Source: Parasitella parasitica NRRL 2501
Lineage: Eukaryota; Fungi; Mucoromycota
Length of the DNA stretch: 64,000 nucleotides
Direction: 5' to 3'
Assembly: GCA_025201805.1 (NCBI GenBank)
Contig: MU619313.1
Span: 34,848 to 98,847 of the forward strand
In this document: one piece after another, positions 8,070 through 45,900 of the stretch
How positions within the stretch are numbered: position 1 is the first letter of the stretch
How the letters are laid out: the number at the start of each line of letters is the position of its first letter
Made by a program: the position numbers and the translations under genes
The notes under the pieces: generated by a model
Databases searched by the model: none
What the model was told of the DNA's origin: nothing
The model's input: the letters and a program-made list of their open reading frames with translations, nothing else

Positions 8070-9195
8070 TGGTATATTAATGAGTTAATAAAAAGGCAAA
8101 AGATATCTTTTCTCTCAATTCACTGAAGGAGAAACTCAAGGAATAGATTAGTCACGGCATAAACGCATGAATTCAGCCACATTTTACTTTTTAGGATGGC
8201 TCAAACAACCCTTTTCAAAAGAACAACAAATTATCACTATTGTGGAAAATCGGGAATATAATGGTACATATTGTTAAAGTTGTGTGAAGAAAATTGCAAT
8301 CAAATTTGATAATATTTCAGGAAGATGAACTAGTAATGAAGTGCTTATTGATCACGTTTTGTATTTTTATTGCCTTTGCATATAGCTACTTCGGAAAGTG
8401 TATATAATGCAAGTATTATGTCCACTTCAATGGCCAACACAACGGGTATTCAGAATAACCTATATTTCAGGACGTTGATCTTCTTTTTTAAAGGCTTCAG
8501 CCGATTTCATATAAGGATGGTTCATAGGACATTGTAGCAAGAAGTATGCACTTGCAGGTTACTGGTTAGATCATATGTGATTATAAACGCGTTACCAAGG
8601 CGAGCATACTTATAGAAGACGTTTGTCATCAAGAACAGAGACCCGTAGCATCTGTCATAAGGTCCTTTGTTCCTCTGATAAACGAAAAAAAGTTACATCA
8701 TTAGCAAGGGAGCAAGCAACAATCAAATATCGAAAAGTCTGGGTTAAACATGTTTTTGTCTTTGACCTATAAATCTTGATCCACTAGAAAAATAAAGCTT
8801 TGCAATAGGTTTATTGACCCACTTTATGATGAGTCCCTTTTCACTTTGAAAAGTGACAGGGAATCAATGGTGTGACAAAGCATAACAGTTTCAAACGCAC
8901 AGAACCTGCACCAAGCCTTAAAAAATATCGTCTTTAAGGGACATGTATTTACAAGGCTTCCTTTATTGAAGTTGCAATAGCAACATAAATTATTTAAATT
9001 TCATTTTTTTTTTTTTTTTTTTTTTGATTTAGTTAGCATGACAAGTTATTGTTAACAAATATATTTATTTTATTAACATCAAATCTCTGAAGAACCTTTT
9101 TTATTAACCGTTTGTTGGTTAACTTATAAGTGGTCGAGCCACTAACCTCCTTTAGGCGGTCCTCCCCATTGTTTGAGTAGATTGTAGAAAGAATA

Positions 9196-9262
9196 CTTTA
9201 AATTCAGACGCTGTTAGTTTTTTTCTGGACGAATGAAAGTTAATATCCAGACGTTTAGCTTA
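9196..9262 (+). repeat. Left terminal inverted repeat
   Basis: CTTTAAATTCAGACGCTGTTAGTTTTTTTCTGGACGAATGAAAGTTAATATCCAGACGTTTAGCTTA is the reverse complement of 14454-14520 with 3 mismatches. Confidence 0.95.
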
Positions 9263-9806
9263 TAGAGATATATGTTAGACTTTTTCACCTACTACCATCC
9301 AATAATGTAGTATGCTAATTGAATAATTTCTGGTCCTGTACGACGAGAGACAGTGGATGCAGGTGGATCTCTGAGACTGAATTTATTTGAAGAAGGCTTG
9401 GTTGTACTTTGCGGTGAAATAACCTTTGAGGTTTGATGGATGATTCTTGCTATAGTATAATGATCCCGGGACAAAACCAGATATATTATAGTTAGTTGAG
9501 GATATAATGCTTGTATAGAATCTCAGCGATTAAATGACAATTTAAGTAAGAGTCCAAAATATTTTAACGTAAAGAGGGCAGGTGGGTGTGCCTAATTTTA
9601 TAATCTTAAATTAAATAATCCTTAACAACACAACTGGTGGTCGCCTCAAGCATTTGAGCCATAAGCGAAGACCGAAAAAAAAATGACAAACTCCAAGGCG
9701 GGATACCACCCTCTCATCAGTAATAATATAAATGTTGTCCGTTTAATCACATTTTTTTAAAATCTTTGATAGATTGTTTTTCTTTCACTTTCTTACTCTA
9801 TTGAAC

Positions 9807-12800
9807 ATGTCTAATGAATATTGGTCTGACATTATTAAAATAAAGAAAGAAACGGTTTTCAACAATCGATTGGTATTTAATGAAGGTCAGAACTTAATAA
9901 AAATATATATAAGAGTTTTTATTAACTGATATTACAGCAAATGCAAAGTGTACCGACTGTGAAGAAGTAGGCCATTTCAATAAAAACTACTAAAAGTGCA
10001 AGTTTTACAAAGGAGCAACCACTGATGATGGTATGGCAGTTTGATATTAGTTATACTATTTACATATAATAATGATCACATCTGGTTGGAACCTCAAGCA
10101 AGAAAAGAAAGCAAAGCAGAAGTTTGAAGCAAGATAAACAAACAGCAAAACGACAAAAGACCACAAATGATAATGTGTCCAATCTTCATTGTAAGAAATG
10201 CGGTGGTAATAATCATGCTATAGCAAGATCCTCCTTATGCCCACACAGTATAACATCCAGAGCTAAAGTACTAGAACAGAACCTTGGCACTAATTACAAG
10301 GCATTCACAAGAAAATTACCTTTTGATAGCTGCATCAATCAAGCTCACCGCCATATTAAAACCAACGTCATATAGACTTGTGCTGCTGTGAGGGATATCA
10401 TAGATAGAGCCAAAATTTTTGTGAATTACTATGTCTTGTCGAGCTCAAGTGGACAAGTCCCCGATGGTATCTTCAAGAAAAACTTTTGGTACAGCATGTG
10501 TCAACTGGTAAATAGCCAAAGAATCACAAACCAGAAGGGCATACCAGCCGATTTAATTACTGTATGGAACGATTTTCGTAACAGATACAGACATGCCAGT
10601 GTGAATATCAAACTTCTTCCAGGTGCCAGTCAGTGTATCTCTGAAGCATGCACTGAAATCGAAATGCTGTATAATAACATGATTGTCGAAACATTTGAGC
10701 TTAAACTTCTGTCTTTTCTTCACTACAAGGTCCAAATGTTATTACCGGTAAGCGTAATATTTCATTATATGACAATCACTTATATAACAAATCAATAGAA
10801 TATCACAAAACGCTCTATAATTGATTTTTTTTTTTTTTTTTTGTATTAAAGTTTATCTTTATTAAAATTTCATGATGAAACTATAGATTAGGTACAGGCA
10901 AGGTCAAGGTGCCAGCTTGAACACTTGCCAGAGGAAAGAGAAGAAAGTAGTAAACCATGTTAACACATGCCGAAGCAATCCAGGGCTCCGTGTCTATGAC
11001 ACATCGCCAATGATATTTCCAAAGTGTACTGTAAGCAGTACCAAGAGCCACCATAACCTCTTCATCGAGCATCTCCAAATCTTGAGAACAGAGACTAGTG
11101 AGAGCTTGCCAGATAGACATGGCAGTTGGGAGGAGATCCTGCAGGGACAGCAAGGATACAACATCTCGCCAATACCGGGCTTTGAGGGAACAGCCGACAA
11201 CAAAATGTAACAAGTCTTCTAGAGCAAAACCACACAGAGTACAAAGAGGAGACGGAACTTTTGCTGGAACTATACGATGGCACCAAGAGCGGTGAGCCAC
11301 ACGATCAAGCAACAATCGCCACCAAGGTGTGAATGCTTTTGCTGGCAGCTCCAGGGACCAGAAAAGACGCCAAGAAGGAGGAGGTAGTCGCAAATGGATA
11401 GGCAGACGAAGTGGAGGACCCATACGAGAGGTAATGATATCCTTTGCAGGATGCCAATACCTTCGCAGGGCGTTCAAAGACAAGCGAGCCATAGGAACAG
11501 AAGAACGAGAGGAATTGGAAATTGTCTAGTGTGAGCAATCTGGCATCCACGAAGAAGCACCATCAGAACGGGGCATAGTATGATAGTCTGCATGACACAA
11601 GACTATCTTACTATCCATGACAGGCGGGAAAACCAGAGAGACAGGACCAAAATCTTTGTTCATATCCGAAGAAACGCGACGAAGTTTAGTAGGCCATGAC
11701 AAGTGACGAGTAGTACCATCCACAATGCCAAGATCAGGACGCCAAGAGCAAATATCTGATACCAAGTAGCGAGGATCCAGAGTAGCAGGATCAATCATTG
11801 AAGAATCTGGAGGCACATTACTAAGTACATAACATAATGGAAAATCAAGAAACCACCTAGCAGACCAACTAGAGGAAGGAACTAGCTTGGGTAGTTTTAT
11901 CAGTAGATTGCTGAGATGTTTGAGAACAGGAACAGAAGATACACGAAATTTGAACTTGTCAGGAAAAGAGAACCAAGGCAAGACAGATTTATGACCAGTG
12001 TATACTTGGAAGGCGTAAACCAACCAAGCAGTGACAAAATTAGAAGGAGAAGGTGGACGCAACAAGCGTTGCAAATAGACAAGATGCAGAGCCAAGCTCT
12101 GATCTGCTATATCCACCAAACCAACACCACCAAACTTGCGAGGAAGACACAAAGTCGACCAAGCAACACCAGGACGAAACGACACCAAATACTCCCGAAC
12201 TACTTTCTTGAGAGCCATCACCCACGACTCAGTAGCAGGGCCACCAGGAACACCACGCAACAAATGATACACCTTAGGCAACAGCAACGAGTTAGCCACA
12301 AGTCCAGCTTACCGAACGGAGAGATTTCTTTGCTTCAACAAGTTACAGTGCCTTTGGACCTTTACTAATAAGTCATTTAGAAAATCACTCAGTTGACTAT
12401 CAGTATGATACAAGGGATAACCCAAGTATCGGACCGCACCACAAGAGAGAGCATTATGCCACTGGAGACCAGCAGCATGCGCCAAAGCAACCCAAGCGGA
12501 ATGCGGCCTATCAGAAAGAGACACCAGCATAGTCTTGCTAAGATTGGCCTTCGCGTTAGACGCTCGGCCATACATATCCAAAAGAGACAACAAGACTGGC
12601 CACTCATCTGGGGACGACAAGAACACTTCCAGATCATCAGCATAACTCAGAATCTTGACAGGAGACGGAGCACCAGTACGACTAACAAAGTCCAATTGTC
12701 GATTGCAGGAGCCATCACCAAGATCCTCACGAACTTCCACCGGGTTCTCTAATTGAATCAATCTCTAGTAAATACTGCTACCATATGTCAAGGGAACCCT

Positions 12801-14320
12801 ACCTGGCCTGAAGATGACTGCATAAATGAACGAGTAAAAGCAGCCATCCACGATATGTGTACACCTTTCAAGCAGGCACTGAATAGAAAAGTTAACTTGA
12901 GCGAACTTGCAAAAGATCCAGCCGTGTTTGCTCGATTTTTATTATTTCTCAATGCCGGATTGGAGCGCGAAATCGAAGAACATAATCCTTACGATGTGAG
13001 GCGACTTCCACTGCCAAAGCTCATTTCGGTGTTGCCAAAGGCATCAACACATTGGAGATCACTCACAATAAGTGTGAACGCCTTGTCATGTTTTACAAAA
13101 ACACCACTGCCACGGGGATTCCAAAGACAGCTGATGTTGTTTTATGATGTTTTCAATTTTGGGAAACTGCGATACAGAGAGTGAGTATAGAGATTGTATC
13201 AAATCAGGCTTATGTATTTCTTTGTAGCATTGCTGAATTAACACCAGATGGAAACAACCAGATCATTTTTGGAAACTTGATACGGACTGATGGTTTTGTT
13301 GTGGATTTTTTATTCTACAAAAGAAATCAAACCAATTACGGTTCTTCTTTAAAAAACTTTACCAGAAGTAGCAGAAAAATATCACCCCATTTTTGTTGAC
13401 CAAAGTCAGCATATACTGCCCGTGAGTGGGTTAAACGCGGTAAGCCACCCAATAATCCGCTGCAGTGCTAAAGAGTACTATCATCTTACTGGCTCGACTG
13501 TTATTTCTGCCCAGCAGCAATCTTTGAAAAGTCAAAACGGAATAGAGGGTATTGAATCAAGCATCCCCACAGCCAAGACATCAAACCCAGAGCGTTTTTT
13601 AGACTATGTGCAATATCTGCTTAACAACATAAATACTTTATTCAACTTTTACAATTCCAGTACTGCAAAAAAACGCTTCCAACTTTATCAAGGGAGGCAA
13701 AAAGCGCAAGAAACTATGGTCAATATGCTTATAAACAGCGACACCAAATCAAAGTAGGAGAAAAAGGAAGAGGCAGAAAAAGAAGAAACAAACGAAGAGA
13801 AGAAGAGACCAAATAAGAAGGATGCTATCAAGCACAAATATTTACTTGAGTATATTCTAACTTTTTTTAATAATATTTGTATTTTGGAAAAAAACTAAAC
13901 AAATGGAGGCCTGTCAAATACAAAGAAGACAAGACGAAGGTTTTTCTGGTAGTGTTTGGAGATAGAATGTTCAACAAAGACACCAACAAGATCAGGACGC
14001 TCAGAAGTGGGGTGACGGGTATTTTACGGCGCACGCTGAAAAAGCGAGAAGCGGCTGGACAACTCATCACAATCACAATTGACGAGTTCCGAACATCCAA
14101 AGCATGCAGTAAATGCCAAACTCTAACCTTGACGCCAGCCTCGACTGATACTAGAATGAGTGTGCTTGCTTGTTCTTCTTGTCGTACTCTTTGGCAAAGA
14201 GACATTAATGCATCCCGAAACATGATGACAATCTCTATCGGCATTTGGCAGGGACGAGAAAGACCAACACCTTTTCGACGCACCACCACCACCACCCCAC
14301 CGCCGCCGTCATCACTGTAA
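9807..14320 (+). pseudogene. Fanzor1 (eukaryotic TnpB-family RuvC nuclease), intron-containing, disrupted
   Basis: Motifs: IRTDGFVVDFLF, YHPIFVD (RuvC-I Asp 13398-13400), CSAKEYYHLTG, VVFGD, IDEFRTSKACSKC (Glu 14084-14086), CSSC and WQRDINASRNM (Asp 14201-14203). GT-AG introns at 9886-9937, 10748-10798 and 13181-13227. Lesions: TAA 9991, TAG 10373, L1 insertion, and frameshifts near 12781, 13360, 13401-13421 and 13745. Confidence 0.9.
10825..12749 (-). mobile_element. 5'-truncated L1/Tx1-like non-LTR retrotransposon (RT C-terminus plus zf-RVT), degenerate
   Basis: Minus-strand ORF pieces contain KILSYADDL, VRYLGYPL, NSLLLPKVYHLL, LPRKFGGVGL and CTLC...EDLLHFVVGC. Poly(A) tail is T18 at 10825-10842. 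TAATTGA direct repeat at 10818-10824 and 12750-12756. In-frame stop at 12309-12311 and a frameshift near 11526. Confidence 0.93.
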
Positions 14321-14328
14321 TAAAAACA

Positions 14329-14540
14329 GCTTACCTAGTGTATTTAGATGACAACGTTCACTCAACTTTTGTTGTTTGGATGCTTTATAGGTAAGCGTCT
14401 AAACATACATTTCTATTCGTCTGAAAAACTAAATATGCTTCGTCTAAAAAAGGTAAGCTAAACGTCTGGAAATTAATTTTCATTCGTCCAGAAAAAAACT
14501 AACATCGTCTGAATTTAAAGTAGAAATACTGTGCTGTACC
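14329..14540 (+). ncRNA. Candidate Fanzor omegaRNA (scaffold plus flank-derived guide); boundaries uncertain
   Basis: GCTTACCTA (14329-14337) pairs with TAGGTAAGC (14388-14396), and the stem extends inward through four G:U pairs. A second hairpin TCTGGA/TCCAGA lies in the TIR. The position between the nuclease stop codon and the element end matches known TnpB/Fanzor loci. Confidence 0.55.
14454..14520 (-). repeat. Right terminal inverted repeat
   Basis: Reverse complement of 9196-9262, followed directly by TA. Confidence 0.95.
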
Positions 14541-14797
14541 GTAGTCCAGAGCAAAGACAACATGAACCGGCCCGCTTTTATTGTTTGATGTCTGGCTTAC
14601 TCAAACCTTGTAAAGAAAAAATAAATAATTAAAAAAGCGTTTTATAGCATCTCTTCAATATTTCTTTGTTTCTTTCTCTTTTTCTCCTTTCCAATATTAT
14701 TTTTCTTCTTAAACCTTGTGATAGGGGTATCATCTAATAACATTCGTAGGCATTCTATAAATTCCATTTGTTTATTTGTCATATACCTTACACAAAG

Positions 14798-16284
14798 ATG
14801 GAGAATTTATTGGCTTTCCAATCTCAATCTGTCCTTCGACATGATGAAGGCATGGATCTTGAAGAATTCTTCAAAGACAATCTTGAACCACTTATGAAGA
14901 AATTCAAGTATAGATTATCACAGTTCGAAAATACAGTTGTCAGCAGTGAATCAATTCAAAACTATACACTTTCAAAAGTCAACAAAGCTTATCTTTTATT
15001 GGAAAGTCTCGGCCAAGAATGGGAAGAACGTCGGCAGAGAGCTTTGGAAGCAAGAAGACAAATACTGCAAGAATTATATGTTAAAAAATTGGATGATAAA
15101 ACAAGATATTACCATTTCATGACACCTCCAGATCTTATGAGCGTCATGCTGGAATTATCCAAAAAATATCATGAGCTTGAAATGGACAGTAATGGCGAAA
15201 TGCTTGATAATACAATTGACGCTTTTATGCTTAAAATGGAAGAACTAGACGGCAAAATTTCAGATGCTCTTGGTCGTGCTGATAAAATGCTTGAAAGATT
15301 CGAAGAAAAGTTAATGGTTGTTGCAGGCGTTGCAAACGAACACATCGATAAACTGAAATACGCAATGTCATTCGGCTCAAATCGCTTGCTAATGTACGAC
15401 GAACTGCCTGGACCTTGGCAAAGCAATGAGGTATGAAAATAGCAATGTAATACCAAATTAAACCTTATGTCCATAGTATACCTAAACGGTTTTATTAGTA
15501 TATCCGAACAGGATACCGCTTTTTGGATTCAGCAGCTGATTGCTGGTATTCTCTTTTCTATGTCCATAACGAAACTGGCAATATCTGGACTCATCTTTTG
15601 GGGTTTATCGCTTTATTCAGTGTTGGAGTGTATGAGCTATTCTTTTCAGAATTAATGACAAGCATTCCTGTCAAAGATCGCTTGATTTTTTTGGTATTTT
15701 TCTTGGCTGCTTGTAAATGCTTGATGTGTTCGACTGTTTGGCATACATTATCTGGAATCAATAATCTCAAGGTGTATCGTCAAGTCGCATGTCTAGACTA
15801 TGTTGGTATCTCTGTGCTTATCTGTGCAAGCATAATGCTCTGTGAATACTATGGTTTCTACTGCACTGATACTGTGCGTAATACATACATTACTGCCACT
15901 ACTACATTGGCTGTTATTGGCGTTAGTATGCCATTTCAAGCTTGGTTTGACAAACACGAACGCAGATGGCTTCGCATTGCCTTCTTTATTGCATTAGCCT
16001 CCTCAGGAGCCATTGTCATAGGACACCTTACTGTCATGCGTGGTGTAATTGAAACATTTAGTTGGTTAGCACCTGTTTTTAAATCAATTGCTTGCTATCT
16101 TGCAGGTGTTGTTATTTATGGCAATCAATTCCCTGAGAGATTCTGGCCTGGCAAATTTGATCATTTTGGGCATTCGCATCAATTCTGGCATTTATTTGTA
16201 TGTGGTGGTATATGGTTCCATTACCAAGCAGCACTCCAATTTGCATCAAGCCGTGAAAGCTTTGGCCAATGCCAATTAATTTAA
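14798..16284 (+). CDS. PAQR/hemolysin-III family 7TM protein (Izh3-like) with N-terminal coiled coil
   Basis: ELPGPWQSNE|YIRTGYRF across an intron at 15431-15498, then HNETGNIWTH, STVWH, CLDYVGI and FPERFWPGKFDHFGHSHQFWH. Confidence 0.92.
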
Positions 16285-16357
16285 TTATTTATTAGTACTA
16301 TGTAATGATATCCTCGCTTTATACAGAAAAATAAACTCGCATTCTATATATTTTGCC

Positions 16358-17556
16358 TTAAATCAAAGATATCCTTGTGCGAACAAGACCACCTCTAAAG
16401 TTTTTCATGGGCTGAGGCACTTGTTGCAGTCTTCTGAATGCTTCATGGATATGTTCAGCTAATAACGGTGTTTGTTCTGTACTTGGTAATGAAAACAAAC
16501 CGTTAGAAAACGAATCCGGTGATCCAGGTGTTTCATTTTCAATACTGGAATGTGCTTCATCTTGCTGAGGTGTGGATACTGTACCATCGGCTGACGTTGT
16601 GATAATAGCTGCTGCTGGTGGTTTAGGTGTTGTTGTGGTCTCCATGCTAGTAGCACTCTCTTCTTCTTCTCTTTTTCTTTTCAACTGTGAGCTACCTAGC
16701 GAAACTGGTTCATCCTCTTTTTTACCAGTTGTTTCCATTAAATCACGTTTAATACTGATGGCTGTCATGGTTAATTTGGAGACCATCTCATATGTCAAAA
16801 AGCCCAAACTATCAACTATATCGTCGTTTGGTTTGACTTCAACAAAGGAGCTCATATTTGCCCATTCTCGAAACCGTTTGCCTTTTCGGTACGTAAATGA
16901 CGCTTGTCTGCACTCGGAATAATGCACGTATTCCTCTCGTGTCATAGCTCTCGTAATGTCATCTGCATCCTTCAACCGTTGTATAGAATCGTTGTAGGCT
17001 TCTAATTCATCCTCATCCTCTGATTCATCGTCTCCATTCATTGATTTTGTAATCACATCAGAGAACTGGTTTACTAGTTCCCATGGCAATTTAATGATAC
17101 TACGATGGATTTTTCCTGTATTGGTTTCTTCTACAACGTCCTCTACTTGATCACTAGATGCGTCTTTAGCGTTTTTGCGTACATCCTTCCAACTAAGGAA
17201 TGATCTCAATCTGTTCACTTTGGCGCGATCATGTCGCATCAAAAATATCAAGTCTTCAGCGTTTAAGTATCTTGAATTTCTTCTATTCGCTTGCGCTGCT
17301 GCTTGGATGATCTATTTTCTGGTTAACATACGTTTAATTAAGCAATAATTTGAGCTTACAATTTCTATCACTTGAGATCGCACAATGTCTTCAACCAACA
17401 GAGTTGCTTCTTGAAGTGGGTCGGCTACTTCTCCAAATACAAACATCATTTGCTGTATTTCGCTTTGAAAACGATATTTAGACTAAACAATAAGTTGGAG
17501 TGCCTAAATTAGCCTTTATTTTATATCCTCGCACTTACTTTTTTTGCTTCAGCCAT
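16358..17556 (-). CDS. SPT3: SAGA subunit Spt3 (multi-exon)
   Basis: YRFQSEIQQMMFVFGE, EDLIFLMRHDRAKVNRLRSFLSWKDVRK, YVHYSECRQASFTYRKGKRFREW and HIHEAFRRLQ. Confidence 0.96.
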
Positions 17557-42913: not shown

Positions 42914-45900
42914 ATGGAAGATGAACCCACTTCACTGCAGCTGAGCCAATTCCAATATCATAAAAATACATCCGACTTAATAGATGATGGCGCCATGCAG
43001 GACTTCAAATCGTTTCATTGCCACGACAGCTTTAATAATTACACATTTCTAGTTTCCCGAAAACGAGGATCGACATTTATATATCCGTCAGAACGAGATG
43101 AATCTCTCGTTGAGCTAAAGATTGGAGCTTTGCTGCCATTTCACCAAAACAACGATCCCTGGACAAGGACCATGACGATGAGGTATAGTGATGCANNNNN
43201 NNNNNNNNNNNNNNNNNNNNNNNNNNNNNNAAAAAAAAAAAAAAAAAAAAAACAGGGCACATTAAAATTCATTTTCATTATAGTGGTATTTCTGCTATTC
43301 GATTGGCTGTAGCAGAGATAAATGCACAACGTCTTATCCCAGGCGCATACGTTACGCTGATAGAGAAGGATTCATATCCAAAAAATGTAAGAGGACAAGC
43401 TGCCATTACAGAGGCAGTGTATTCTGCTATCTCATTAATACAGGAAGGCGTGGTCGGAGTCATTGGCGATATTTCTTCTTCATGGACCTCGCTATCAGCA
43501 TTAATGACAAGCACATTACAGATACCACAGTGCTCATTTTCAGCCATAGCTAGTAAGACGATTTATGTGATGGCTTACCAACACACAGCATTAACATGAA
43601 AAACGACTGTAGCTTCCTTGTCGGATAAATCTCAATTTCGCTACTTTTTCAGAACAGCACCTACTAATTTGCTGTACTCGGATGCCGCCATTGCATTTAT
43701 TGTAAGCCAAGGATGGCCTCAGCTCGGTATAATCTATTCAAATGATGATTTTGGGCAGCAATGTAAGCCAAACACATGGCATAATGGCATACTCTATTCT
43801 TATTTCTGTTCAATACTAGTGTCCGAAAATGTTGTCATGAAAGCTCGAATGCACGATATTCACGTAAAAACTTATTTATCTTTCTACGATGATGGCCCCA
43901 AGAGCGACATCAAGAAATCGCTTGATATGCTAGTAGCAACTGGCGTTCGAGTGATATTTGTTGCTGCTGAAAACGCTGCCCAAATGGCGGTACTGACTAT
44001 TGCAGCACACAGTGGCTACATCAACGACAAAACAGTGTGGATTACAATCAACGCTGACACCAACACACTCTTTGCAGCAGTGAAAGACTATAATGCTATT
44101 TTAGGCAGACGAGCAAACAACACAGACGTCGTGCCAGCCATCTATAAAACAGCCTTCGCTGACGATGCGTCGTCCAACACAACAAAATCAGACCGAGCAT
44201 CAAGGAAGCAATCTCTGATTGACTTGATCGACCCAGTTGAATACGGTGCTCGTACAACTAACAATTTCACACAGATTGATTTCAACTCTACGTTTTCTGG
44301 CGGTGTCTTTACTTTTGATGTCTTGAAGGAATTGCCGGGATATCCTCCTTTTGACACTTTTTTGAATAAATGGTCTCATTTAGACCCTGCCATGTAATAC
44401 CTATATATATATATATATATATACATACAAAAAAAACACACATTTCGATAGCTAACCCATATGTACAATAATAGATATCCGTACGGAGGACAAAACAACA
44501 TTAGCAGCAATGAAGGTATGGCTTACTCCTGCATGATGGTCATGGCTAGCGGCTTCAATCAAACCATCAACAATTCTTCATTGCCATCTTCCCGCAAATC
44601 TGATGTGCTGAGAAAACTGGCTTCGGGCCAGCTTGGCGAATCCCTGAATCTATCGGCTTTCAACACATCCTTTGTTGGGCCAGAAGGACCTGTTGTATTT
44701 GACCAAAATGGAGACTTGACATCCGGGTAACGTTCGCTTTTGTTCAATAATAGTTTTACAATCAACTGAAAAAAAAAGTTGCTATAGAAACTTCAAGCTG
44801 TACAATCTCCAAAACGGTTCTCAAATCGAAATTGGCAACATTATCGCCGGTAATATGAATCTGACATCTCTGCCCATCTACCATGATGGCACCACAAAGG
44901 TACATGTATTTATTCGGCGCTGAAAACGGCGCATTTCTTGCTTACAATGCGTCTTATTAGTATAGATACCCACAGGTGTTCCTGATCGATTGTATCTAAA
45001 TCCAGGTTACAGCTCTCCTGTGACAATTGCTTTGCTTGTTATATCGTCAATAGGAGCCTTCATTGCGTTATTTAGCATGGTCATTGTGCTCCGGTACAGA
45101 AAGCAAGAAATTTTCAAAGCATCTAGGTATGCTATTTAGGCACACAGTGTACAGTTGACCTGTTTTAACAATATAACCGATAGCCCTTTGTTTTGCGTCC
45201 TTGAATTGATCGGATTCCTGCTTTCGTACGTCTCGCTGTTCTTTTTTGTGGGATATAGAACAAAACTAAATTGCACGCTGATCCCAATCACTTTTCATTT
45301 GGGATATTCGCTTATATTGGGGTAAGACACACGCAAATGGCTTACGGGGAATTCAAAAAAAAAGTCTCATGTCTCGTCATTTGTATAGAAACTTGATTGC
45401 CAAAAACTACCGTATATATCGTATCTTCAACAACATTTTCATCACGCGCACCGTCGTGACAGATGTCCAGCTGTTGAGAGTGTCAGGATCAATATTCGCC
45501 ACCACTTCTGTAAGGTTATACAGACATGTTGATAAAGCATCGACTGACTTGCTTTTCCCAATTTTTAGGTTATTCTGATTGCTTGGTTTGTATCTGTTAC
45601 CGTGTCAACAGTCAATGTACCGGTCTCCAGGACTGCATACTATACAGATTGCTCATATGAAGGAGGCGTAGGGCACACTGTATTTATCACGCTATTGACA
45701 TTATTCGGCTCATTCCAGCTCATGTTTGCTACCTATTTAGCGTTCAAGACGAGATCTGTGGGTCGAAACTACTCCAAGTATAGTGAATACAAGCAGATTG
45801 GACTCTCCGTGTACAACATCTTTTTTTCCGTGCTGATCGGATTCATCATCTTTTTTGTGCCGACTACAGACTACTACACTCGTCATTATCTGACAGCCAC

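Follow-up and report, generated by a model that had tools for sequence, protein, structure and literature searches.

A sense-strand RNA hairpin behind a decayed Fanzor1 gene in Parasitella parasitica, a putative part of a spliced guide-RNA precursor

A long, G:U-rich hairpin follows the Fanzor1 gene of a transposable element in the fungus Parasitella parasitica; it is real, unlikely to have arisen by chance and specific to sense-strand RNA. With slightly better than even confidence, we favour reading it as an enlarged second stem-loop (SL2) in the 3' tail of the Fanzor1 transcript and as part of a spliced precursor of the guide RNA (omegaRNA). The sequence studied is a stretch of 64,000 nt from strain NRRL 2501 (GCA_025201805.1, contig MU619313.1, positions 34,848-98,847 of the forward strand), hereafter called the window. 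Its features around the hairpin are collected in Table 1. A run of 35 N bases occupies 43196-43230.

Table 1 Features of the Fanzor1 element and its 3' tail, in window coordinates
Feature	Position	Strand or type	Basis
Transposable element holding the Fanzor1 gene	9194-14531	Tc1/mariner-like	Inverted repeats and family copies
Left terminal inverted repeat (TIR)	9194-9262	-	96% complementary to 14454-14522; lacks the terminal 11 nt present in other copies
Non-LTR retrotransposon (LINE), 5'-truncated, inside the Fanzor gene	10825-12760	-	Pfam RVT_1 and zf-RVT on minus-strand open reading frames
Last Fanzor1 coding exon	13877-14320	+	Open reading frame, translation, Pfam and PDB matches
SL1, CUGU-AAUAAAA-ACAG, stop codon in the loop	14315-14329	+	Conserved in 13 family copies
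Outer stem, 5' arm, GCTTACCTA = GCUUACCUA	14329-14337	+	Homologous to the linker and SL2 5' arm of relatives
Inner G:U-rich helix	14340-14383 (14340-14354 pairs with 14369-14383)	+	Fold, pair counts, alignment A5
Outer stem, 3' arm, TAGGTAAGC	14388-14396	+	Equals donor site 1 and the innermost TIR repeat
Donor 1, UAG/GUAAGC	cut 14390/14391	+	Junctions in X2 and X3
Spliceosomal intron (right TIR)	14391-14520	+	Junctions in X2 and X3 contigs
Donor 2, AAG/GUAAGC (14450-14458)	cut 14452/14453	+	Junction in X2
CUAAC branch motif	14499-14503	+	Sequence
Acceptor AG, 11 nt before the element end	14519-14520	+	Sequence and junctions
Last 11 nt of the element, UAGAAAUACUG	14521-14531	+	Retained after splicing; flank begins after 14532-14533

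Inverted repeats of 69 nt (9194-9262 and 14454-14522) bound the element. Comparison of family copies revealed that the true family termini are CAGT...ACTG, reading ...ACTG/TA at either end with a TA target duplication of the Tc1/mariner type, which places the right end of the window's element at 14531. The original prediction had drawn the edge of a 'TA-flanked 67-bp TIR' at TTTAAAG/TA; this point coincides with the intron acceptor described below and is not the family terminus. Copies and RNA contigs diverge beyond ...ACTGTA, and the window copy has TG at 14532-14533 where other copies show the TA duplication. Open reading frames in the element encode only Fanzor domains and those of an inserted LINE, and we found no transposase gene in it. 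By its TIRs, TA duplication and lack of a transposase gene, the family classifies as a non-autonomous Fanzor carrier of the Tc1/mariner type. Compared with the right TIR (14386-14531), the left one (9194-9300, minus strand) has an internal deletion of ~38 nt, and it reads TATAAGC where the right end carries GGTAAGC.

The Fanzor1 stop codon, TAA, lies at 14318-14320. The last exon matches Pfam PF07282 (Cas12f1-like TNB, E 1.9e-10), and its translation has a RuvC-II glutamate (IDEF) just 5' of a CxxC...CxxC zinc finger, an RDINA motif and, in the PDB, weak similarity to TnpB-like nucleases of solved structure. Single exons served as the protein queries. The nearest named protein, from Cokeromyces recurvatus, is 78% identical, and a word search with the last-exon protein yielded eight relatives, four of which were used in comparisons. 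Mucorales have long been known as carriers of Fanzor1 (PMC3627910). The window copy is dead, as its LINE insertion (with the poly-A tail appearing as poly-T at 10825-10842), frameshifts, shortened left end and TG at the right duplication attest, so no present function is required of any feature here. Stretches of 4-26 nt present in relatives are missing from it, and every family copy in this genome is decayed.

Folding confirmed the core of the predicted structure. As plus-strand RNA, 14329-14396 reaches -25.7 kcal/mol (z -5.49), an energy equalled by 0 of 200 dinucleotide shuffles, compared with -13.8 kcal/mol (z -2.4) for minus-strand RNA and -7.5 and -7.1 kcal/mol (z about -2) for the two strands as DNA. 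These strand-specific energies support the earlier proposals that the wobble helix belongs to plus-strand RNA and that the structure is a sense-strand RNA fold rather than a DNA palindrome. The hairpin starts 9 nt 3' of the stop codon, in keeping with the position directly after Fanzor that had been claimed for it. The perfect 9-bp stem of GCTTACCTA and TAGGTAAGC is where it had been placed, and GTATTTAG (14340-14347) pairs with TTGGATGC (14376-14383) through the four G:U pairs described. The continuation proposed for this helix, ACAAC with GTTGT, can pair but requires a 3-nt bulge; the minimum free energy (MFE) structure prefers a bulge-free inner helix of 15 consecutive pairs, six of them G:U, set off from the outer stem by a 2-nt bulge. 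The hairpin as a whole has no left-end counterpart, as had been stated, but a degenerate mirror of its 3' arm motif occurs in the left TIR (TAGGTGA, 9291-9285, minus strand). When the wider interval 14321-14545 was folded, the MFE structure paired the 5' arm with the second GGTAAGC (14452-14458) and not with the 3' arm of the hairpin. By these predictions, the hairpin is one of two competing folds in the window copy.

We then compared the hairpin with the 3' tails of related elements, using a genome protein scan with the last exon (79 matches) together with a motif scan and the relatives. A small stem-loop, SL1, sits at or 3' of the Fanzor stop codon in 13/13 family copies. Its family form is CYGU-AAYAAAM-ACRG with five pairs, and 95% of pair cells across the 13 copies are paired, against 17-53% in slid controls. 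Clades other than that of the window carry CCGU/ACGG, and at pair 7-19 seven copies have CG where the five window-clade copies have UA, a compensatory change. Since SL1 lies past the stop codon in other copies, its conservation is not a coding constraint. SL1 is followed by SL2, a short hairpin whose stem and loop vary by lineage (UCCC-GAAA-GGGA, UCCU-AAU-AGGA, UUCUUA-GAAA-UAAGGA and others); RNAalifold identified compensatory pairs in SL2 of relatives, including the forms with a GAAA loop. On the 3' side of SL2, the family has a conserved AUUUAGAU, then UUUACAG, then GUAA or GUAUGU.

In alignment A5, the long hairpin occupies the SL2 position of this module and contains a 33-nt insertion found in the window clade. 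Its position, where the SL1-SL2 module common to the family has its second stem-loop, is thus consistent with the omegaRNA scaffold originally suggested. The local SL2 3' arm is lost from the window clade, which has gained ~33 nt between AUUUAGAU and UUUAYAG (~14350-14383 in the window). The inner helix pairs the AUUUAGAU stretch, in its 5' strand, with part of this insertion, in its 3' strand; the former 5' arm of SL2 and the subsequent GGUAAG make up the outer stem. Reverse-complementing the 5' strand of the inner helix reproduces its 3' strand except at six transitions, and at 6/6 of these a G:U pair is preserved. This pattern fits an inverted duplication that was retained as an RNA helix.

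Several further elements surfaced in these scans. Locus L076 (G000:C69:67289-67306, minus strand) combines a window-type SL1 (CUGU/ACAG) with another long hairpin (GCUUC...UUUGGAU / AUCCAAA...GAAGC) and almost no TIR; here SL2 seems to have been enlarged independently a second time. A truncated 1.1-kb element at G000:C44:71003-72148 (L046, L075, L035) consists only of the Fanzor C-terminus, SL1, SL2 and both TIRs. Elements of ~3.7 kb (L028-L032, including L029 at G000:C25:19300-23750) have TIRs of ~135-200 nt that are ~80% identical to those of the window and bear two GGTAAG motifs per side. The SL1 motif is absent from these ~3.7-kb elements, which carry a distantly related Fanzor gene with a different 3' tail. 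One TIR type is thus common to the two Fanzor lineages, that of the window and the ~3.7-kb type. Four of the ~3.7-kb loci consist in large part of N. A metagenome scan for the SL1 motif gave 26 matches, all of them unrelated bacterial contigs except L120, which belongs to the family of contigs C8 and C21, and added no diversity.

Four copies retain the long hairpin: those in the window, on contigs C92 and C165, and at a locus of Cokeromyces recurvatus (L036). Within the 32.8-Mb genome, C92 and C165 are the two other places that have it, and ~20 more share the TIR only. Across the four-copy alignment, 86% of pair cells hold standard pairs, compared with 32-50% for slid partners. Six one-sided changes each retain their pair through a wobble, and there is no compensatory double change among the four aligned copies. 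Three pairs occur in the window copy alone, and the decayed C165 copy disrupts several. Variable columns are fewer in stems (7/48) than in loops (8/20) when C165 is left out (p 0.03). Between the window and Cokeromyces, identity is 88% in the coding exon, 94% in the hairpin, 70% in the spacer between the GGTAAGC motifs and 92.5% in the outer TIR; between the window and C92, the corresponding values are 64%, 79%, 65% and 83%. The TIR segment between the two donors is the least conserved and contains indels. Conservation across copies thus gave a divided answer on the predicted structure, with the hairpin conserved above the coding exon and the long helix free of compensatory changes. This identity pattern argues for constraint on the hairpin sequence, while leaving the helix itself unproven, and because the four copies are 92% alike, some of the conservation may reflect recent ancestry or transfer.

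We found RNA evidence that bears directly on the right TIR. Logan contigs from three runs, presumed from their labels to be RNA, were compared with 12760-16400; such contigs yield no counts, ends or strand. The first set, X1, is from the same organism as the window (85% of words, 0 mismatches); X2 and X3 are from relatives, with a likeness of mostly 95-99% across the Fanzor gene. GT..AG joints in a neighbouring gene (15429-15496) and in the Fanzor gene (13440-13517) establish X1 as RNA, and the RNA status of X2 and X3 rests solely on such joints. Contigs of both X2 and X3 leave the window at 14387 and continue with CAG, TAGAAATACTG, TA and two different flanks, a join of 14390 to 14521. X2 has a second join, of ...GTCTAAAAAAG onto TAGAAATACTGTA, which links donor 2 (14452) to the same acceptor (14521). 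A single X3 contig of 1448 nt spans the open reading frame, the hairpin, the junction and ~275 nt of flank. Depth in X2 is ~152 for the exon compared with 11-16 for intron-internal contigs, and X3 has zero coverage over 14468-14589. A genome search found the joined form to be absent from this genome's DNA, and a metagenome scan for the spliced junction returned zero matches.

These relatives, then, remove almost the whole right TIR as an intron, using two alternative donors, with GT..AG ends, a branch motif and RNA junctions in X2 and X3. Splicing leaves 11 nt of the element and TA beside differing flanks. X1 contains only unspliced RNA across 13517-14532, in a contig of 2122 nt. This contig passes from 14532 into the flank of the TIR copy in C44, the 1.1-kb element, probably an assembly path through identical terminal 31-mers. 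The splice signals recur in diverged copies. A donor lies directly 3' of UUUACAG in C44, C8, C21 and C152 (C33 has GC there), and a second donor is present in C44, C8 and C21. A CTAAC, TTAAC or CTAAT motif occurs in C44, C8, C21 and C33, and none was seen near the acceptor of C152. The acceptor stands 5-10 nt upstream of ...CTG/TA in 5/5 of these copies. C21 retains its intron signals in a TIR that shares only 52% identity with that of the window. The original proposal of an omegaRNA of up to about 200 nt through the right TIR is accordingly split: a sense-strand structure does stand at the SL2 position, but the TIR is spliced out in X2 and X3 (14391-14520 or 14453-14520), so that in those organisms an RNA running through it is an unspliced precursor.

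Other joins were visible in the same contigs. A 47-nt GT..AG intron (13181-13227) is spliced in X2 and retained in X1, and an in-frame stretch of 78 nt (13440-13517) is spliced in X1 and retained in X2 and X3. A 56-nt stretch (13832-13887) is missing from X2 and X3 and has GC..GG ends in the window, whose splice sites are probably mutated there. X1 contigs also join 12748 to 12803, and the 54 nt skipped (12749-12802) have GT..AG ends on the minus strand, a pattern suggestive of splicing in an antisense or LINE-derived transcript where the LINE and the Fanzor gene meet.

Spliced forms of eight copies were joined computationally and folded. In 6/8 copies, the predicted folds comprise SL1, SL2 and a junction helix of 5-6 bp; Cokeromyces and C92 fold differently. 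In the junction helix, the UACAG that closes exon 1 (in the window, UAUAG) is paired with CUGUA, formed by the element terminus and TA. In the window the pairing joins 14384-14390 with 14529-14533, and it also occurs in L075, L071, L072, L079 and L073. The strands of this helix are also constrained as a splice site and a transposon end, so covariation cannot serve as a test of it. In unspliced RNA, the same UACAG/CUGUA pairing would bridge the two ends of the intron.

The hairpin itself overlaps the first donor. The core of its 5' arm, CUUACCU, is complementary to the donor site and presumably resembles the 5' end of the U1 snRNA, which reads donors; U1 snRNA genes were located in this genome by search. 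The predicted energy for opening donor 1 is 8.6 kcal/mol in the window, 7.1 in C92, 4.4 in Cokeromyces and 2.5-5.3 in other clades. Masking of the donor at the level modelled here fits the intron retention in X1, but it may be peculiar to the decayed window copy and not a conserved switch. After splicing from donor 1, only UAG of the 3' arm is left, so the outer stem would exist before splicing or in the donor-2 product, whereas the inner helix persists.

These observations can be assembled into a candidate route to a guide RNA. The tail common to the family consists of SL1 over or just past the stop codon, a short SL2, the conserved AUUUAGAU, and UUUACAG with a splice donor. In the window clade, the 33-nt insertion pairs with AUUUAGAU to form the inner helix, and the old SL2 5' arm pairs with the donor to form the outer stem. 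Removal of the TIR intron sets the SL1-SL2 scaffold beside the last 11 nt of the element, TA and flanking host DNA. Such a layout is the one a Fanzor guide RNA needs, and we infer that the spliced RNA serves as the guide and is bound by Fanzor. The outer stem, before donor-1 splicing or after use of donor 2, may lower donor use.

Several features of known Fanzor1 omegaRNAs are recognizable here. The hairpin is on the sense strand, 9 nt past the Fanzor stop, in a tail that extends to the right end at 14531. Its SL1 is 95% paired with a compensatory pair, SL2 covaries, and the long hairpin is 86% paired without a compensatory change. A guide would carry ~14-21 nt of non-conserved flank as its 3' extension; the X2 and X3 contigs enter different flanks, and as contigs they show no mature 3' end. 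We also entertain a wider proposal, which we hold to be possible but doubtful: that across this Mucorales Fanzor1 group the TIR is a spliceosomal intron, that the spliceosome and not a nuclease joins the scaffold to the element end and target flank, and that in the window clade the U1-like strand, by pairing with the donor, determines how much RNA stays unspliced as messenger and how much becomes spliced guide precursor.

An unlikely alternative is that the omegaRNA is unspliced, running ~200 nt through the whole right TIR into the flank, with the splicing in relatives a side reaction. It draws on the X1 contig, which carries unspliced RNA across the hairpin and TIR, and on published Fanzor guides, which overlap the right inverted repeat (PMC10530073, PMC10432273). 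Yet the X2 exon contig is at ~10x the depth of intron-internal contigs and X3 is empty over 14468-14589; the inter-donor segment is the least conserved part, which is unexpected of a scaffold; splice signals are retained in strongly diverged TIRs; and a scaffold of >200 nt would exceed the 75-150 nt known. Quite unlikely, in our estimate, is a functionless local inverted duplication, in which a 33-nt insertion in one clade folds by chance and appears conserved because its copies are young or horizontally transferred. All six transitions between the strands preserve G:U pairs on plus-strand RNA, the hairpin is conserved above the coding exon and far above the adjacent spacer, and its stems vary less than its loops, all of which weigh against a chance fold, even though the hairpin is clade-specific, lacks compensatory changes, has only decayed copies in this genome and has an inner 3' strand that is the reverse complement of the 5' strand save for the six transitions.

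We give little credence to two remaining readings. The structure lies in a transcribed transposon and has 68 nt, ~24 bp and numerous G:U pairs, so it could in principle be a Dicer-type, microRNA-like precursor that feeds RNA silencing, and Mucorales have active RNAi; a guide RNA is indicated instead by its position and by the homology it shares with SL2 in the module at Fanzor tails, and we consider the Dicer reading highly improbable. It seems to us just as improbable that the structure acts at the DNA level, as a cruciform or a transposase binding site formed by one more inverted copy of the inner TIR repeat. The 3' arm is indeed the inner TIR repeat, which recurs at 14452-14458 and in the left TIR. 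But folding as DNA is weak, and equally so on either strand; only 9 nt of the repeat, without its GTCT part, are matched by the 5' arm; the left end has no counterpart; and the inner helix relies on G:U pairing. We rejected the cruciform or transposase-site reading because of the fold energies and the extent of the motif match. An IStron was rejected as well: across 14150-14700 no Rfam family came near threshold (chance-level matches only), none was a group I intron, and the junctions are spliceosomal GT..AG.

The spliced-precursor reading bears on the route, not yet settled, by which Pol II transcripts of eukaryotes are turned into Fanzor guide RNAs. The long TIR between scaffold and flank is an obstacle in mariner-type carriers. 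If the spliceosome removes it, guide formation would be tied to host splicing, and the persistence of donor, branch and acceptor motifs in diverged TIRs would be explained. It would also offer a shorter natural scaffold for genome-editing tests. In the literature searched, we found no description of a spliced Fanzor guide; the guides there are continuous with the right end.

Solved Fanzor1 guides measure 75-150 nt and have an SL1 of 7 bp and a variable SL2 (PMC11423790). The tail studied here resembles the Fanzor1 omegaRNAs of SpuFz1, GtFz1 and PpFz1 (PMC10432273, PMC11423790) in its order of SL1 and then variable SL2, in a transcript that enters variable flank, and in a TA-flanked, mariner-type carrier without transposase. 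It differs in that known scaffolds are continuous with the right end, whereas here ~130 nt of TIR intervene and are removed as an intron in relatives. SL1 is also shorter, at 4-5 bp compared with 7 in solved guides. Donor-masking hairpins of cellular genes, such as the terminal stem-loops at tau exon 10 and SMN2 exon 7, pair a 5' splice site with a U1-like strand and can lower its use; here, the effect is a prediction from opening energy, and the window copy alone shows it strongly. Splice sites are also built into the ends of introner elements and of further DNA transposons; introners are spliced whole from host genes, whereas in the window family the downstream TIR alone is removed, and from the element's own transcript. 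The nearest concept comes from bacterial IStrons, where a group I intron and the TnpB guide are in conflict (10.1101/2023.11.20.567912). IStrons, which combine a TnpB transposon with a group I intron (10.1101/2023.11.20.567912; PMC13521648), likewise encode intron and guide scaffold at one end and have RNA structures that overlap and compete at a splice site. They are bacterial and self-splicing, the whole element is removed from host RNA, and splicing destroys the guide; in the window family, the intron is spliceosomal and covers the TIR only, and splicing would create the guide layout. The window's element brings together two alternative donors in a Fanzor TIR and a hairpin that overlaps one of them.
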